A stretch of DNA of 64,000 nt from Selaginella moellendorffii (lineage: Eukaryota; Plantae; Lycopodiophyta): assembly GCF_000143415.4 (NCBI RefSeq), contig NW_003314293.1, forward strand, positions 372,001-436,000, given 5' to 3'. Positions 51,369-63,159 of the stretch are shown here, piece after piece; the stretch's first letter is position 1, and each line of letters begins with the position of its first letter. The position numbers and the translations under genes are program-made. Below the pieces are notes generated by a model, which did not search any database, was not told the DNA's origin, and was given only the letters and a program-made list of their open reading frames with translations.

Positions 51369-52171
51369 ATGGCATCGCGCATGGCGGGTCGGGCATTTGG
51401 GCGGCGCATTCTCCAGGCGGCGCCGTCGGCGTCGCGGCGGTCGGCGCCATTTGGATTCGCGGGCGCCGCGCCTCGCAATCCAGTAAGATCCAGGTAAATC
51501 CCTTTGTGGGTGTCACAGGTTCTTGCTTCTTTGTGATCCCGAATCTCTCCTCCTCTTTGCGAATTCTCTTGTCCAGCCACTTTGCGAGTACATTCGTTAT
51601 TCTTCTCTCCTCCTCTTTGCAAATTCTCTTGTCCAGCCACTTTGCGAGTTACATTCGTTATTCTTCTGTCCTCCTCGTTGCAAATTCTCTCGTCCAGCCA
51701 CTTCGCGAGTTACATTCTAGTTGCCATTCCCTTCTCTTTTTGCTCAAACTTTGCAAGGTTTTCTAGCTTTCTCGTGTGCTGCCGCAAGCTCTCTAAGTTA
51801 CCTTGCTTAGAGTTTTCTCTTCTGGCAACTTCCCGATTAGCTTGCGAAGTATCGTGACGATTTATCTTTGCTGTTGCCTCTTTGGAGATCAAAGTCTCTT
51901 GTGTGCTCTTCCACTGCGAAGTTACATTAGAGTTTTCTCTTGTTGGTATGAATGACTATTACACACGTCGTTGCTCTCTCAAGTGGCAACTTTGAGAGCC
52001 TGTAACAAATCTCGATCTCTGCCTGGCAGGATCTTCCGGCGGGAGCTTCTGTCGATGCGGCCGCTCCACAGCGCGACGGCCGACTGCTGGATGGTGTCGC
52101 GGATCTCGGGCTGCGCAACCTGCTATGAAGGTGATCTCAGCTGTCTCTTGGTTCGTTCTCGGATATGGTAG
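51369..52171 (+). CDS. NFD6/NOXY2-like small mitochondrial protein, dispersed copy 4
   Basis: Exon 1 (51369-51493) reads MASRMAGRAFGRRIL. Exon 2, from 52030, reads IFRRELLSMRPLHSATADCWMVSRIS. The 3' end is uncertain. Confidence 0.7.
51543..51718. repeat. ~60-bp intronic tandem repeat x3
   Basis: tctctcctcctctttgc(g/a)aattctcttgtccagccactttgcgagt(t)acattc occurs three times. Confidence 0.9.
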
Positions 52172-52453
52172 AAACTGTTGCCATCACTTTAATATCAAAG
52201 GTGGGTGTTTCAGGCATCTATCTCAAGTGGTTGACGATGTGCCTCGAGAATTCGCAGTCGGTGGCAACAACATGATCAAGTGAAAGAAACCAAGACGAGA
52301 AATACCTCCTGTGGTGCCAGCTTTGCCTAGACTTGTCATCAGTTTAGTTATCTTGTTCTCATGATTGTTCTCAAGAACTATCTGCAATTATTCAAGTGCA
52401 CACATTTTTCTCGTTCGTTTTAAACGGAAATTTCTAAGTACCTTGCTTTGCTG

Positions 52454-55400
52454 CTACCATCGGTTGCCAAACTGTCCATCCCACTCTCGAAGCTGGTCGA
52501 GGTATCCAGCGTTATAAGATAAATTAACCTGCGGAGGATTGTCAAAAAAACGCTTGACAACAACACTTGACGTATAGAAGCATACCTCCTCCAGAGTACT
52601 CACGAAGTCCTGTGTTGTAAGTGGCCTTAGTTCTTGAGGCAGTGGCTGTCCAAAAGCATTTCTTTTGGCCTGAAAACGAGGATGAGTTCACGAAACAGTA
52701 AATTGAAATTGGAAGCAAGTCATTTACTTTCTCTAACTCGAGCATTTCTCGAACAGGCCGATACGCTGCAGCCACAGTTAAGTTCTGAAAGGAAGCAATG
52801 AACGTTTTGAATCACAAACAACTTAAGATTAAGAGTGACACCTTCAAGTCATTTGCGCTATAGCCATCAGTTAATTCTGCTACTCCTTTAAAGTCGAAGC
52901 CATTCTCAATCTCCTCCTTGGCAAGCAGCACAACAAGGATTTTTTCACGGCTTGATAAATCTGGAAGATCCACGCACAATCTGCCATCAGAGAGATGAGC
53001 AACAATGTCGTTTTACTATTGAAAGTAGACCTTTTCGGGAACTTTTGAATGACTGATTCGTCCAAATGGAAGGGTCGGCATGTAGCTGCCATCACCACAA
53101 CTGACTCTGCTATTCCTGACATGAGCCGATCCCATCCATAGATAAACTCGGACTTGAACCTCGTCATTGCTTCTCCAGCTTGTATAGCGAAAATACTGTC
53201 GATCTGATGACGGCACTTACAAGAATAGAACAAAAATGAAAGTGAAATGCACCTCATCGAGAAAAATAATTGATGGAGCCAGCCTGCGTGCAATTGAAAA
53301 CAGGGCTCTGGTCATCCGCTTCGGATCCTCAAGCCACTGCACCACAGAAGCTTCAGTGCCAAACTCACAACCTCTATTAAGGGTACCTTGTACTCAATAG
53401 AATTGCCTCTAAGCCAAAATAAGTTCGCGGAAGACTGGGCTGCAACGGCCTTTGTCAAGTAAGTCTTCCCAGTACCAGGCGGTCCATATAAAAGTACACC
53501 TTTGCAAGGCTATCCAGGCGTCAGAGACACAAAGGTCGTAAGCTTTCAAGACTTACACATGCCAACGCTCCCTTGGCAAAATGTTCTGGTCTCAGGAGGG
53601 GCACCACAACATGCTCTCCAAGAATTTTCTTCACATCCTCAAGTGCACCAACGTCATCAAATTTCGGTGCGCCGTTTGGCGCCAATACTGTAGACAACAC
53701 AGCTTCTTCGAACTCGTCTTTTGCTACTAGCTGTCAAACAAATTAAAAGCAGTCAAATTTGATACAAGCAAATACCTTAGGACCTTGCGCATGCTTGAGC
53801 CGTCTCAGCTTGAGAAGCGCTCTATCCAAGCTGCAAACCTGCATTATCGATCTGATTAAACAGCACAATCTTCCACGTACCTGCCTGCCGAAAGAGAAGT
53901 TTTGGCAGTCGATTTGTCTACGTGAACATTCTGTGAGTTTGAATATTCGTAGCTCACTGCCCAACTTACAACGTACTCGGCCTCTGTAGTAACTTCAGTT
54001 CCTCAGCGTTCCTTCCAAAGAAGAATCGGCTTACCCGAGTATGTGAGAAGGAAGTCACATATTTGAAACTCGATAAATTCCAAACACACCAGGTTGTGGG
54101 ATGTCAGAACCTGAAGAAACACTTTAACAAATAAAAAATGAATCGAAAAATAGAAACCTGAACCTTCTGTAATAGTTGGATATTCTTATTCGCAGTAACA
54201 CGCTCACCGTCTTGCAAAAGAAGCGCTTTCCATCTCCAGAAATCTAGATCATCCTATGAGCTGCCAGAATCAGCTCAAGCCTAAACAGTCGTGTAAACGA
54301 TACCTTTGGAGGAAAAATATCGACCACATTGGCGAATAAGTTATGTATACTCTTCAAGCTCTTCCTTTTAACCTGAAAAAAGCTGTCAAATGACAACGAG
54401 TGACAATTATAACTAGTTACCACAGAAAGAGGCTCATCTGCATCGGAAGTGAAGGTGGCAATAAGAGCGACGTTTCCAATCACTTTGTCCAATTGCCTTT
54501 GTAGATTGTGAATGATCTCCTGCTTCCAAGCTACAGGGACTGCTCTTTCAAACCATTGCTCAAGTTCCGAGAAGTACACAATCAAAGGCTTAGCGCTTCT
54601 ACTTATCTGTAAAAATAAGATGAAAAAAAATCCAAGTATAAAAGACAGGATACCTCGCACAAAGCGCTGATAGTGGCTTGCCATGCTGCAAGGAACATTG
54701 TATTTCCAGATTGATCCTTGTCAAAATCAGACGCTAAAGCAAGGCTGTTAACATATTCTCGGTAAAGTTAAAAAACGAGCTTACCATAATGCCATTCAAT
54801 GGGAGGACTTCTTCGAATGTCCTCGAACCTTGTTGTTAACTTGAGTGCGTCCTCCGTCGCATCAAAGAGGATCCCAATCTTTCCAGAAACACTTTCAGAG
54901 ACGGCAATGACTCGACCTCTACAATCAGTCTCAACAAATAAGTAAATAAATATCGTAAAACTGAAAAACGCTACCTTTGCCTTTCGTCCCTTTTGCTTAC
55001 GACACGATCACCTGAAAGCAGCATCTATGTCATTTAGGCAAATTGTAAAAGCTCTTACCTTTCCTGAACCCATTTTTGAAGCCCGTCACCTTCAATGGTG
55101 TACCACATGTTCAGTAGAATACAGAGGCAATATTACAAACTGTTACCTTCGACATATCATCACCTGCTTCAACTGCATCAGTATAACCATCACCGTGATC
55201 CTGAAAGGAACACAAATTCTCGTAAGTCAAATGGACTGATAACAAAACAAAAATACACGAGAAACGAAGATGGATGGACATACAAGTTCTGGCAAGGAAC
55301 CAGAACCTCAAGCACATACTTGAGGAGCAAGATCTGTACTATCGAGCATTAGTAACGCTACGCCTTGATCATGAGCAATTGCTTTCACCAGCATTTCCTG

Positions 55401-56962
55401 GTACATTTCCGAATCTTTCACACAAAAAGTCAGAGAGTTCGTTTTCACTTTGGCATTGAGGCTTACTTTGTGGACCATTCAGCAAGATCGTATTGCTGGA
55501 GGCACAAAGGCCGGACAAGTGACTCGCTCGTCTAGATTGATCGAGGCACGATCCCAGCGCCTCAACCAGGAAATCCCGAGTGACATCACTGGACACAATT
55601 TGCAACAGTTAGCATACCAGCAACGCGAAATAAGATTATATACCTCAGGTAATATGGGAACTTCGTCAAAGAAGCGTTGATTCTCTCGGCGGGCTGTATT
55701 TTCTCCACGAAATACTTCTTCAGTGACAGCTTCAAACCTGTCCCGACCGCTTTTCTATACTCGAAAGCTTCCCTTGCGACAGTCACGTCTCTCTCGAGCC
55801 GTTCCCGTTCCTGCTGTGCCTCGCACAATGCCTTGGATGCCAAGTCCACTTTCCGTTCGGCCTCGCAGAGATCCTTGCATTTAAGTTCCTCCCTCCGCCT
55901 CTCGAAATCTAGCAAGTCATCAAACTCGTCACCATCCTGCTGAGCACCAAGAGCTCCATCCACCTGAAAAAACGCAAACATTATATGGCAGGAAACGGCA
56001 AAAACAAAAACGAAACTTACAGGTCCATTCCTGAATCCCACGCATCCGTCTTGAGACCGCATAAGCAACTTAGCACGCTTCCTATCAACTTTAGCAAGCT
56101 CAGCCAGCCTGCGCTGCCAGTCGACGTTCCTCTCCCTCTCCACCTCTTTGAGCAAGTCTCCATATCCATCACCGGCCGCGACACCCACGCCCGAATCCCG
56201 CTTCCTCTTGGTCGCCCTCGTCATCTTCTTCCCAGAGCCCAGCCGCGGACTCAAGCCAGCAGCATTCGAGAACTCCTGGTAGCTGCTCGTCTCCGCCGCT
56301 TGGCCCGCCACCACGTTTGAGTTCTCACTCGGCGAAGCGTCCAGGCCAGTCTCCCCAGGACCCTCGAGAAGAAGAGTGTGACCACCTCTTCCAAAAGAGT
56401 TCCCGGACTGTGGCGACGTAGTAGGCAAGCTCGCGGCCGGGATGTTGAAGATCAAGTCGCCACCATTGTCAAGAACCACGACGTCCTCCTCGTCACTCCC
56501 CTCGGTATCCTCTCCACAGCCATCGCCCACGGCGGGCTGTCCAGAGATGGGCGAAGCTCCCGCGGCGGAGAGCTTGGTGGTGTTGCCAAAGAGCTTGTTC
56601 ATCACCACGTAAAACTCCCAGGGAGAGGTGTGGCCAGTGGGAGCGTACTTCATCCTCTCGCGCTTGTAGCGCTTCTTGAGGTTGTCCACCTTGGTCCGGC
56701 ATTGCTGCTCGTTCATGCTGATGCCACAGAACTCGTTCACCTTGTTGGAGACCTCGGTCCACTGCGCCATGGTGAGATTGCCCATGTTGCTCTTGGTCCA
56801 CACGTCCTTGAAGCACTCGAGCAGCATGATCGCGTGCATAAAAGGCCAGGAATCTCGGTTGGCCTTGCGCTTGCGCTGCTGCTGCTGCTGCTGCTGTAGC
56901 TGGCACTGTGATTGCTGCTGCTGCTGGGAATGGCTGGAATCGCCATTGGCGGCATTGCTCAT
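52454..56962 (-). CDS. Trihelix (Myb/SANT-like) domain fused to an MSP1-related plant AAA+ ATPase
   Basis: N-terminal polyQ and W...QWTEVS...[17 protein letters not shown]...WEFY lie in the same ORF as the FPYYL block. Downstream exons give [27 protein letters not shown] (~53462-53485), SIIFLDE and GYSANDLK. Confidence 0.78.
56873..56926 (-). repeat. CAG microsatellite encoding polyglutamine
   Basis: (ctg)n runs on the plus strand translate as [18 protein letters not shown]. Confidence 0.9.
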
Positions 56963-57087
56963 CCCTGGCGAGAAAAATCACACTGTGAGCTCCGCACAGA
57001 TCGATAGAATTGACAATCCCGAGGATAATTCTTAAAATCTAGCTGACAGGGATGGAAGAAACAAGAAATCTCAGGCGCTTGGATCGA

Positions 57088-57230
57088 GATGAAAATCTAG
57101 GCGAGAGAGGAAACGAAAGATTTTCGAAAATCTAGCCGAGAAATCTCTGGAATCTAGGCTCTTGGATCGAGATAGAAATCTAGGCGAGAAAGATTTTCGA
57201 AAATCTAGCCGAGAGAGGGAATGTCTAGCG
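57088..57230. repeat. Short degenerate repeats (AAATCTAG(G/C)CGAGA) between divergent genes
   Basis: The motif recurs about 5 times in the 436-bp interval between the trihelix-AAA gene and TAF13. Confidence 0.6.
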
Positions 57231-57398
57231 CCGCGCATTCGCAGAAGCGCACATTTCTCACCTGACATCGATGCCGCCCCCGCCGCTGCCGCCGCCTCGC
57301 CCTTCCGCGCCCGGGCGGCAGCATCCAGGCTAACGTTTAGATCCATCCCCTTTTAGGGCTCTTCAAATTGGAGAGAGAATTTAGGGTTCTTGGGCTCA

Positions 57399-57988
57399 AT
57401 GGCAGGGAGGGGAGGCAAAGCGCAGGAAGGCGGCAAGCGCAAGCGCGGAATGTTTAGCAAAGAATGTAAGCATGGAGTTTCTCATCTCTTTCGGTTTCTT
57501 TGTATCGATCGATCGCTCGCGCTTTTGCAGTGAGGCTCATGATGTATGGATTTGGAGACGATATTTGTGTAAGCTCGCTTTCTTGTTCTAGTATCTCTCT
57601 AAGCTCGTCGTAAAAGACTCCTACAGCCTCTTCAAGAATCGGTAGCTCTTATGGAGGACATGATGATCGAATACATCACTGATATGGTGTGCTTCGTTTT
57701 TTTCTTCTTACCTTTGCTAACTAGAATTTTTTCCAGGTTCACAAGGCTCAAGAAGTATCCTCGAAGAGAGGAAAGCTCACAACAGAAGACGTGATGTTTC
57801 TCGTCCGGAAGGTAACGATTTAATCTTTGTTTAGCGAAATGGTCATCGAGCTTCTATTGATCCAGGACATCCGCAAGTATGCCCGTGTGAAAGAGCTCTT
57901 GTCCATGAACGAGGAACTAAAACGTGCCAGGAAAGTTCTAAACGAGGACCTGGACGAGCAAAAGCTTGCCGCGCTAGAAACCCAGTGA
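57399..57988 (+). CDS. TAF13: TFIID subunit 13 (5 exons)
   Basis: KRKRGMFSKELRLMMYGFGDD, ESVALMEDMMIEYITDM, KRGKLTTEDVMFLVRKD and KYARVKELLSMNEELKRARK. Confidence 0.95.
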
Positions 57989-60822: not shown

Positions 60823-63159
60823 GGACGAGAAATTTCACCCCCCGGATTCTTCACAACCGCATGGTGTTAAACCCTAGAGTACCTCGATCGATTGTCTCGC
60901 GCGTGCTCAAAATCCCTAGAAACGCGAGCCCTCGCGCGCACGCACGCGTTTCTTGCGCCGCCGTGCGTACGCCCTAAAACACATATATCTTTCTTAAAGG
61001 GGTGGTTTTATATTAATGTTTTAACAGAGAGTATATACTAGAGAATACATTTAGAGGGTAGGATCTTTTTATTGTGTTATTCGTAGGAAAAAGGGCTATA
61101 CTATGCAATATAAATTTTTAATGTCATCAATGCATGTTAATTATTTGAATTTCATTATATAGATCTTTTGATTAGGGTCATTATAATAATCATATGATGA
61201 GATTTTGTGAATCTCAAAAATAATCAATCTCAAAAATTAGGATAAAATAGCCATTAAGGTTTTATTAAGTAATTGCCCATTTTTTAATTGATTTAAGAGG
61301 AGAGAAATAAGGTGTGCTATATGTAGTATCAGAGTAAATGACATGAGTTTGATTCCTATTGATTAGTAGTTACTTAAAGAATATAATATACTTTTGAGCA
61401 AAATATAATTCTACCTTTAAATTTAAAATCATATGTATTGAGCATCCATGTATACATCCTTTCTTTTGTGGAGCATCCACAGATGAAAGTAGGACTATGG
61501 TACAAGAGCACCTATGGACAAAAGTAAAATTGTGGTATAAGTGGATGACTAATTGTTTCACTTGGAATAGTTAATTTACACAATAGAAAGATTAGTAAAT
61601 TTAATGTAGAAATGGAAGTGTTAGTTCTCCTTAGCTCAATAGGGGTTGTTAATCAATAGTCAATATCAAAAACTTACAATATAAAGGCCATATGGATAGT
61701 TTATGAATTTAAAAAATTATGGATTTTTCTTTGATGGTCAAAGAATTTTAGAAATCCCAAATAGGATTGCATTAGATATAGCCATGGATACCTATAGTGC
61801 CCATTAGATTTTGAGGAAATCCTTCAAGTATTTTATAAAGATCCATAGGAATATTTGATTTCACATACATAATATGCATTTTTATTTATAGAATATTCAA
61901 TTTCAGGTATAAAATATTCTTTTGAAACCAATATATGATGCCATATGGAATGTTTTACATACAATATAAACTTTTTTCACATAGCACCAATTTATGAATT
62001 ATATGCAATAGCATGTGGCCAATGTTCTCTCTGTTGGAATAAGTGGAAGTACAATTTTGGAGGTCAGACAAAATGGGTGTAGACCATACTTGAGGTCACG
62101 AGTTGAAGAGTTGAGCTCACGAGTTGAGCTCAATTTTCAATTGTAATTTAGTACAAACATTATAAATTTTAAAATTTTAAGGTTATGGTGAACCTAATAA
62201 TTTAATAACTCTCTATATATTATATAGATAAAAATGTTCTAAAGAACACTTTTTGTTCTAATAATTTAAATATTTACTACATGCAATGATAGGGACATTT
62301 GTTAGAACATAAAATAAAATGTTTGCAAAAAGAGTATTCTTGTCACTTCTTTAAATTTGTACTCTATGCTTTCTGGCTAGTAAATGTTAGGTTTGTCAGA
62401 ATTAAAAAATTATTAAATTTGAAATAAGATTCTATGTAAAGCCATATAACCATTTGAAAGGAAAAAAAAAACCGTTGATGTAAGCTTATTGCATATAAAA
62501 GAAAGACTTGGTTCTTTGTAGAATACATTCTTGAGGGGTTTGTCGTAGCATACTGTCTAGAATTTATAGATTTTCATTCACACTCTCATTCGAAAAAAGG
62601 GAAATACACCCACAAATGTCTATGGGTTCTAGTGTTGGTAATTTTAACTTTCACAATCTTTCTTCCTAGGGTTCAAAGGCTAAGAGATGCAATAACTATC
62701 CTATTGCACAGCATAACCAAATCACACAAACGAATGAAAGAAAGGATAGTGAAGATAGTGATCATGAGTTGGAAATAAATGCAATGACAGAGGGTGCAAC
62801 AAATTGGGTGAAAAAGAATACCCTCTTACTTGTTTTAGAAAAGTGCAATTCTGCCACTTTCAAGAAGTGCCCCATATGTTTTCTAGCGTCTGGTGGAAAC
62901 AATGGCAATGATCAGTATGATGGTATATATGCTCTTGCGACACATTGCAACATCACGCACCCGAAAGACTACCATGAAATCTTTTTTGAGATGGTAAAGA
63001 CAGAAATGGAGACACACGAGTACTATAGGCAGTATTGCGAGAAGAACACTCGGAAGCATATAAAATGAAAAGTGAAATGAAAAAGCATATTTTTATTAAT
63101 TATATAAAGTATAATAAGTTTTATTGATAGAGAATAAACATTGATAGTGTTGGAGAAAT

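Follow-up and report, generated by a model that had tools for sequence, protein, structure and literature searches.

What does a plant gene encode when a DNA-binding domain and an ATPase stand in one reading frame, and does the ATPase half still work? The question is raised by a 64,000-nt stretch of Selaginella moellendorffii DNA (RefSeq assembly GCF_000143415.4, contig NW_003314293.1, positions 372,001 to 436,000, forward strand; hereafter the window, in whose coordinates all positions are given). On its minus strand, a trihelix domain is followed by an AAA+ module related to the plant MSP1-related AAA family. Trihelix factors and this AAA family are both poorly understood, and our literature search on the latter found essentially one functional paper (PMC3712482). 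The original prediction, made from the sequence alone, was of a lineage-specific chimera acting as an oligomeric DNA-bound regulator or remodeller. Here, we find that the locus is one real, expressed gene (LOC9638407) with one mRNA across the trihelix and AAA exons, a conclusion that is well supported, and that its ATPase half would be better suited to holding nucleotide than to driving a motor.

One gene across the trihelix and AAA exons

The features on which the gene model turns are the following:

52454-56962, minus strand: coding sequence of the fusion, 1100 codons in 23 coding exons, from the ATG at 56962 to the TAG at 52454-52456
55964-56020, minus strand: in-frame 57-nt GT..AG intron inside a 458-codon open reading frame, joint 55961/56019 in contigs of all four RNA runs
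55644-55963, minus strand: exon 2, a charged helix-prone segment running unbroken into the first conserved AAA-family block (…KFPYYL), from frame and alignment

The locus was recognized by a minus-strand open reading frame (ORF) of 458 codons at 55586-56962, present in the window as reported, which had been described as running without a stop from the trihelix domain into an AAA block. The continuity is genuine, and the 20-residue, FPYYLS-containing block at 55646-55705 reads as earlier described. The ORF itself needs one amendment: it is open partly because the 57-nt intron at 55964-56020 happens to be in frame, and its final 20 residues result from reading on into the intron that follows (55589-55643).

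Twenty sequencing runs from nine studies contain about half of the words sampled from 52300-57300, the share expected from spliced RNA. RNA contigs from four of the runs, representing four studies (X1-X4), were aligned to 51800-57600 (5,801 letters). Within the gene, every listed joint reads CT..AC on the plus strand and hence GT..AG on the minus strand, so the contigs represent spliced RNA of the fusion gene. The longest reach is that of record 9 of run X3 (2,772 nt), in which spliced exons extend from 56959, three bases past the ATG, to 53387 in the Walker A exon. Each of the four runs has a contig with the exon 1-exon 2 join, record lengths fit exons 3 and 4 exactly, and record 5 of run X2 and record 11 of run X4 extend the gene into its 3' untranslated region (UTR). 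Compared with the window, the contigs of the four runs show neither insertions nor deletions. The trihelix and AAA exons are thus bridged in four studies, as expected of the single chimeric gene first proposed.

The exon model, refined to GT..AG ends, is based on where contigs join or end loosely, on their lengths, and on per-bin depth. It comprises 3303 nt of coding sequence with no internal stop and a single terminal stop, the frame having been checked exon by exon; the introns span 45-119 nt, all 22 in the coding region have canonical GT..AG ends, and the interval 52454-56962 runs exactly from stop codon to ATG. That further exons would complete the AAA module was therefore correct. All exon peptides are found, in order, in RefSeq XP_024537501.1 (P0151; "uncharacterized protein LOC9638407 isoform X1," Selaginella moellendorffii, scaffold GL377597.1), with which the model agrees from residue 30 onward. 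RefSeq predicts a fused protein of 1128/1129 aa, and its isoform X2 (hereafter P0001) is distinguished from isoform X1 by a single Val where exons 10 and 11 meet. EFJ22060.1, the older model from JGI, is an incomplete, 310-aa fragment; the record presented here shows that the RefSeq model is right and the JGI model partial.

The same evidence bears on whether the trihelix factor and the AAA ATPase are really distinct genes, joined only by read-through or by an assembly artefact. Short-read contigs lack transcript ends, so that an AAA-only or a trihelix-only isoform could exist, and retention of intron 55589-55643 would yield the 458-aa ORF with its stop at 55586. Against this, the spliced frame stays open from one domain to the other, exon 2 contains both the trihelix-side segment and the first conserved AAA block, the spliced junctions are identical in four independent studies, and the genome assembly and RefSeq agree. 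We regard two separate genes as exceedingly improbable.

A trihelix domain at the N-terminus

56869-56932, minus strand: polyglutamine (polyQ) tract, then basic RKRK, from the sequence; a 3-nt repeat lies at 56875-56926
56591-56854, minus strand: trihelix (Myb_DNA-bind_4) domain including the fourth amphipathic helix FYVVMNKL, from Pfam, alignment, and AlphaFold2 (AF2)
56189-56221, minus strand: basic cluster TKRKRD in the low-complexity linker, putatively resembling a nuclear localization signal, from the sequence

The polyQ tract and trihelix/Myb-SANT domain claimed for the ORF are both present. Pfam Myb_DNA-bind_4 (PF13837) matches ORF residues 37-124 (E 4e-12; 46.8 bits, cut-off 27) over profile positions 2-89 of 89 and scores 43.2 bits on P0001. 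To collect relatives, HMMER was run exhaustively against 1.84 billion cluster representatives, and 49 of the best were aligned (alignment A1). The Selaginella domain keeps the invariant or near-invariant columns W14, G36, W43, Q62, E77, S88, and W90 (of the tryptophans of helices 1 and 2, W14 is invariant and W43 conserved in at least 90 % of rows), its hydrophobic helix-3 core position is a Val within KVDNLKK, and it follows the consensus …NRGNL…W.EV…VN…QCKNK.D.LKK.YK.EK…W.FF..M..L.G. The motif (F/Y)(F/Y)xx(L/I/M)xx(L/I/M), described for a fourth amphipathic helix after the trihelix domain (PMC4195496), is satisfied by FYVVMNKL at 56591-56614.

The predicted fold agrees with this assignment. 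The AF2 model of the domain (predicted local distance difference test [pLDDT] 77) has four helices, one of them at model residues 93-101, and its top two matches among 350,542 PDB chains are 2jmw and 2ebi, both the GT-1 DNA-binding domain (probability 0.99 and 0.92, template-modelling score by target 0.67, root-mean-square deviation 2.4 Å over 69 columns, with a weak Foldseek E of 0.44). To our knowledge, GT-1 is the only plant trihelix domain with a solved structure. The residue pattern is presumably that of the SIP1/ASIL clade.

The nearest relatives of the domain are small fern proteins (Ceratopteris, Adiantum) with 31-39 % identity, and no close parent gene is visible among the HMMER relatives. 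Because these fern proteins are multi-copy, an origin of the Myb-like domain from a Harbinger-type transposon was considered; no transposase or terminal repeats were found, and no dedicated follow-up was made. After the trihelix domain there is a low-complexity linker rich in acidic residues and Ser, with a KRKR cluster, and a charged segment prone to helix formation, a candidate coiled coil. The basic clusters RKRK and KRKR are putative hints of nuclear or DNA targeting.

A diverged DUF7751-AAA body

53776-55588, minus strand: exons 3-15, degenerate first AAA-like domain (ILLNGPQNSE in place of the P-loop), inserted beta segment (KGDRV…GRVIAV), and diverged DUF7751-equivalent helices, from alignment and AF2
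52728-52980, minus strand: exons 20-21, AAA lid domain (AAA_lid_3, E 6e-7 on P0001, weak on a single exon)

The block at 55646-55705 had been recognized as the conserved start of the plant MSP1-related AAA family, and alignment and phylogeny bear this out. In an alignment of 37 relatives (A2), F-P-Y-Y-L-S is conserved in at least 90 % of rows; positions F10-S15, R48-L51, G53, P54, and E58 are nearly invariant, and all except R48 are kept in Selaginella. At the degenerate P-loop segment, 11 Selaginella residues stand where the family has PRILLSGPAGSE. A word-seeded search with the whole protein was dominated by CDC48-type double-AAA proteins and yielded no relatives from plants; a middle-region query, residues 425-840 of P0001, was used instead. 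It returned 47 plant proteins, from liverworts to angiosperms, all with DUF7751, AAA, and AAA_lid_3 and some with an N-terminal FHA domain, the best matches being from Riccia (E 2e-48), Cicer (5e-39), and Triticum (2e-31). Neighbours in the ESM Atlas belong to the same DUF7751-AAA family, with which the Selaginella protein aligns collinearly from the FPYYLS block through the lid. On P0001, Pfam reports AAA (PF00004, E 5e-26) and AAA_lid_3 (PF17862, E 6e-7), of which the downstream ORF fragments give weak matches. DUF7751 itself (PF24933) has no match on P0001 at E ≤ 0.01, against 30-81 bits in five relatives; the equivalent segment can be aligned to the family, yet it has diverged.

In a tree built from the C-terminal 420 residues, with its root on fungal relatives, the Selaginella protein falls inside a 28-row plant clade (support 97). 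Its grouping with the Riccia/Cicer/Triticum subfamily is weak (support 82), and its exact sister is uncertain because of its long branch. The plant family has been placed in the meiotic clade within the AAA proteins, nearest MSP1 (PMC3712482). In PMC4712874, At1g50140 serves as a mapping marker only.

The AF2 model of P0001 residues 436-845 (pLDDT 78.7, predicted template-modelling score 0.70) has as its top Foldseek matches p97/CDC48 N-D1 and proteasome Rpt subunits (E ~2e-6). Because of these matches, the plant family appears to share the plan of a two-ring AAA protein: a degenerate first domain (GPxGSE for the P-loop), which carries an inserted beta segment, and then the active AAA domain. 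We found no paper that states such a two-domain build for the family.

Degeneration of the ATPase

53462-53485, minus strand: Walker A, GPPGTGKT, kept as in the family
53325-53389, minus strand, across intron 53337-53386: pore loop 1, KWLED against the family's KWFG(D/E), Gly lost, from alignment
53253-53270, minus strand: Walker B, IIFLDE (family hhhhDE), kept
53042-53083, minus strand: second region of homology, sensor-1 TCRP against TNRP, and VIQKFPKR against VIRRLPRR

The end branch leading to the Selaginella protein is 2.05 changes per site long, against a median of 0.1 (~20-fold) and 0.28 for Riccia, and Pfam AAA gives it 92 bits where relatives score 129-141. The sensor-1 Asn is Cys (codon 53078-53080). 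Gln (53045-53047) and Lys (53042-53044) stand in place of the two arginine fingers, and the HMMER alignment sets these two residues opposite the finger arginines of VAT/CDC48 chains. The Trp of pore loop 1 is retained; in the pore-loop-2 region, four residues are deleted relative to the family. The conserved C-terminal tail of the family (…W(N/D).(Q/L)YGEGGSR.K…) is absent, the Selaginella protein ending early. In classic-clade AAA proteins, sensor-1 and arginine-finger mutants lose hydrolysis. Given the changes in sensor-1, fingers, and pore loops, we predict nucleotide binding without efficient hydrolysis or threading.

The "remodeller" of the original prediction is therefore not borne out in the form given: with the sensor-1 Asn and both fingers lost and the pore loops altered, active ATP-driven remodelling by homo-oligomers would be unlikely. 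In its general form, the proposal is that the trihelix domain targets a working hexameric motor, a DNA-bound AAA remodeller or unfoldase, to chromatin, where it would extract or unfold proteins. In its favour, Walker A, Walker B, the pore-loop Trp, and the lid domain are all kept, and the FHA domain at the N-terminus of another subfamily suggests that N-terminal targeting modules are a habit of the family. The substitutions at sensor-1 and at both fingers, the missing pore-loop-1 Gly, the pore-loop-2 deletion, the truncated tail, and the ~20-fold end branch all point the other way, and we consider an active motor distinctly unlikely.

A proposed tethered scaffold or a possibly decaying gene

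The explanation that we favour, at about an even chance, is a lineage-specific pseudo-ATPase that would serve as a scaffold or switch, binding nucleotide while tethered to DNA, and is probably not an ATP-driven remodeller. The predicted product of 1100-1129 residues would comprise, in order, the polyQ tract, the trihelix domain with its fourth helix, the low-complexity linker with KRKR, the charged helical segment, and a whole DUF7751-AAA body. The trihelix domain would take the protein to nuclear DNA. The AAA domain may still bind ATP, because Walker A and B are intact; its hydrolysis of ATP would be poor or nil, given Cys in place of the sensor-1 Asn and Gln and Lys at the finger positions; and substrate threading would be impaired by the missing Gly of pore loop 1, a pore-loop-2 region four residues short, and the truncated C-terminal tail. 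Assembly with itself or with canonical paralogues may be possible.

Several points weigh against the pseudo-ATPase scaffold. Lys can sometimes partly replace an arginine finger, so residual activity is possible. The contigs cannot show transcript ends, and an extra internal promoter might give an AAA-only product. The window and the RNA contigs differ at 12 sites within the coding sequence: the four in the N-terminal half are three synonymous changes and one conservative R>K change, and the eight in the AAA half are seven nonsynonymous changes and one synonymous change, which hints at relaxed constraint. The difference between the halves has a Fisher p of ~0.07 (a hand calculation on 12 sites, with some contigs perhaps from another haplotype). 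The AAA-half polymorphism pattern fits decay as well as it fits a scaffold role.

Decay would mean that a trihelix gene and a duplicated AAA gene were brought together by a rearrangement and that the AAA half, or the whole gene, is now drifting toward a pseudogene with no selected function. The lost catalytic residues, the very long branch, and the preponderance of amino acid changes among AAA-half polymorphisms (7 of 8) would all be expected, as would the fact that our searches found no orthologue or fragment in other organisms. However, despite ~2 changes per site in the AAA module, 1100 codons are open, the ends of 22 canonical introns are intact, and many fold-determining family residues are kept. 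Neutral sequence would not have preserved these, and the long-term history of the locus is therefore that of a coding gene. The RNA contigs are likewise free of indels, the middle region gives a confident AF2 model, and the N-terminal half shows a mostly synonymous pattern. On balance, we rate decay without function as rather unlikely.

A further proposal is that the protein serves as a sequence-specific DNA anchor that co-assembles with canonical DUF7751-AAA paralogues, either recruiting an MSP1-like extractor to particular promoters or capping and poisoning the ring there. It is proposed because the nucleotide pocket is kept but the arginine fingers are not supplied. We hold it to be very unlikely; if true, it would represent a eukaryotic transcription factor acting through a hetero-oligomeric AAA unfoldase.

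The interest of the fusion is twofold. As a natural one, it hints at a possible link between the plant MSP1-related AAA family and the nucleus or chromatin, and it offers a ready-made case of an enzyme body becoming a pseudo-enzyme after gaining a targeting domain. The weight of both points is limited by the occurrence of the fusion in one species only and by the degenerate state of its ATPase half.

Occurrence of the architecture

The original prediction also held that no trihelix-AAA architecture had been described. No other protein and no paper with it were found in the searches made, which agrees with that statement; it is already annotated, RefSeq predicting the fused protein. Among the 149 best trihelix relatives, none has a phmmer match to the AAA part at E ≤ 10, and among the 47 DUF7751-AAA relatives, none carries PF13837. 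Searches open to full-length orthologues returned only the fusion gene itself, and a junction query (P0001 residues 230-560), aimed at partial orthologues of 182-579 aa, had no match elsewhere. The literature search found no paper on the locus, on DUF7751, or on a trihelix-AAA fusion. Our reading of these sequence searches is that the fusion is a real, lineage-specific new architecture, seen in a single species and uncharacterized in RefSeq. Separately, one run labelled as a different organism (run X13, organism B) contains 0.49 of the words sampled from the gene region, which points either to a close relative or to a labelling matter.

Transcript ends and variants

57260-57346, minus strand: optional upstream coding exon in RefSeq models, ATG at 57346, adding 29 residues (MDLNVSL…), spliced from 57259 to 56976
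52454-52528, minus strand: last coding exon, without the conserved family tail (…YGEGGSR.K….F.)
52382-52441, minus strand: 3' UTR intron, 12 nt past the stop codon, from loose contig ends in runs X3 and X4

The start codon is ambiguous (56962 or 57346) because two contigs, record 6 of run X2 and record 4 of run X1, run unspliced through the upstream intron of the RefSeq models (56976-57259). When this intron is retained, the ATG at 57346 starts a 91-codon upstream ORF (57071-57346). The upstream exon begins MDLNVSL, an EAR-like beginning. At the other end of the gene, the 3' UTR intron lies too near the stop codon to elicit nonsense-mediated decay under the usual 50-nt rule.

Minor variation was seen at several other points on the minus strand. 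The exon 10/11 junction (54370-54421) has alternative splice sites 3 nt apart, by which one Val is gained or lost. The 50-nt intron 53831-53880 is retained only in record 5 of run X2, and intron 53204-53252 is retained in minor contigs of runs X1 and X3 that carry two single-nucleotide polymorphisms; contigs tend to break at these two introns, which may reflect haplotype bubbles. At position 53151, the window has G and all four RNA data sets have A, which changes codon 943 from Ser to Phe; the assembly allele is unseen in RNA.

Neighbouring genes and sequence

57261-57600, plus strand: divergent TFIID-18kDa (TAF13-like) gene, 53 nt from the annotated coding sequence start, with a plus-strand GT..AG joint 57465/57531
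51800-52381, plus-strand joint 52128/52212: convergent gene of 106 residues, with no Pfam family
51544-51717: tandem repeat downstream of the fusion gene, 61-nt unit, 2.9 copies, 94 % matching

The region shared by the fusion gene and the TAF13-like gene is probably a bidirectional promoter. The convergent gene either overlaps the fusion gene's long 3' UTR or lies directly against it, and depth over its region (51800-52381) is very high in run X4. At 61000-62000, GC content falls sharply to 0.27, against ~0.5 in the flanks.

Comparison with known systems

With the DUF7751-AAA family (At1g64110/DAA1, At4g28000, At5g52882, and the longer At1g50140/At3g19740 type), the Selaginella protein shares a collinear body, the degenerate first domain, the KGDRV beta segment, and a canonical AAA domain with its lid. 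It differs at the N-terminus, where it carries the trihelix domain and the family has an unconserved region or FHA, and it is without the acidic linker and several segments. With the plant trihelix (GT factor) family, it shares the tryptophans, the GNL…W…QC…K(V/I)DNLKKRYK pattern common to 49 relatives, the fourth helix, and the GT-1-like predicted fold; among the 149 best relatives, it alone carries an AAA module.

There is a precedent for a trihelix-type domain on a plant enzyme. The chloroplast RNase J of land plants has a C-terminal GT-1 domain (At5g63420; PMC7154860; bioRxiv 10.1101/2025.10.15.682605) that, according to the title of the preprint, binds double-stranded RNA (bioRxiv 10.1101/2025.10.15.682605). 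In both cases, a trihelix-type domain is joined to an enzyme body; however, RNase J is a metallo-beta-lactamase RNase, its trihelix domain is C-terminal, and it is plastid-located and conserved across land plants.

Other AAA+ proteins are targeted to chromatin or DNA, including ATAD2/Yta7/Abo1, which combine AAA with a bromodomain, and the bacterial enhancer-binding proteins, which combine AAA+ with a helix-turn-helix domain. The logic of these systems is alike, with a nucleic-acid- or chromatin-targeting domain attached to an oligomerizing AAA module. They belong to unrelated subfamilies with other targeting domains and have one ring or more in which the catalytic residues are retained, whereas the sole canonical AAA domain of the Selaginella protein is without the sensor-1 Asn and the arginine fingers.

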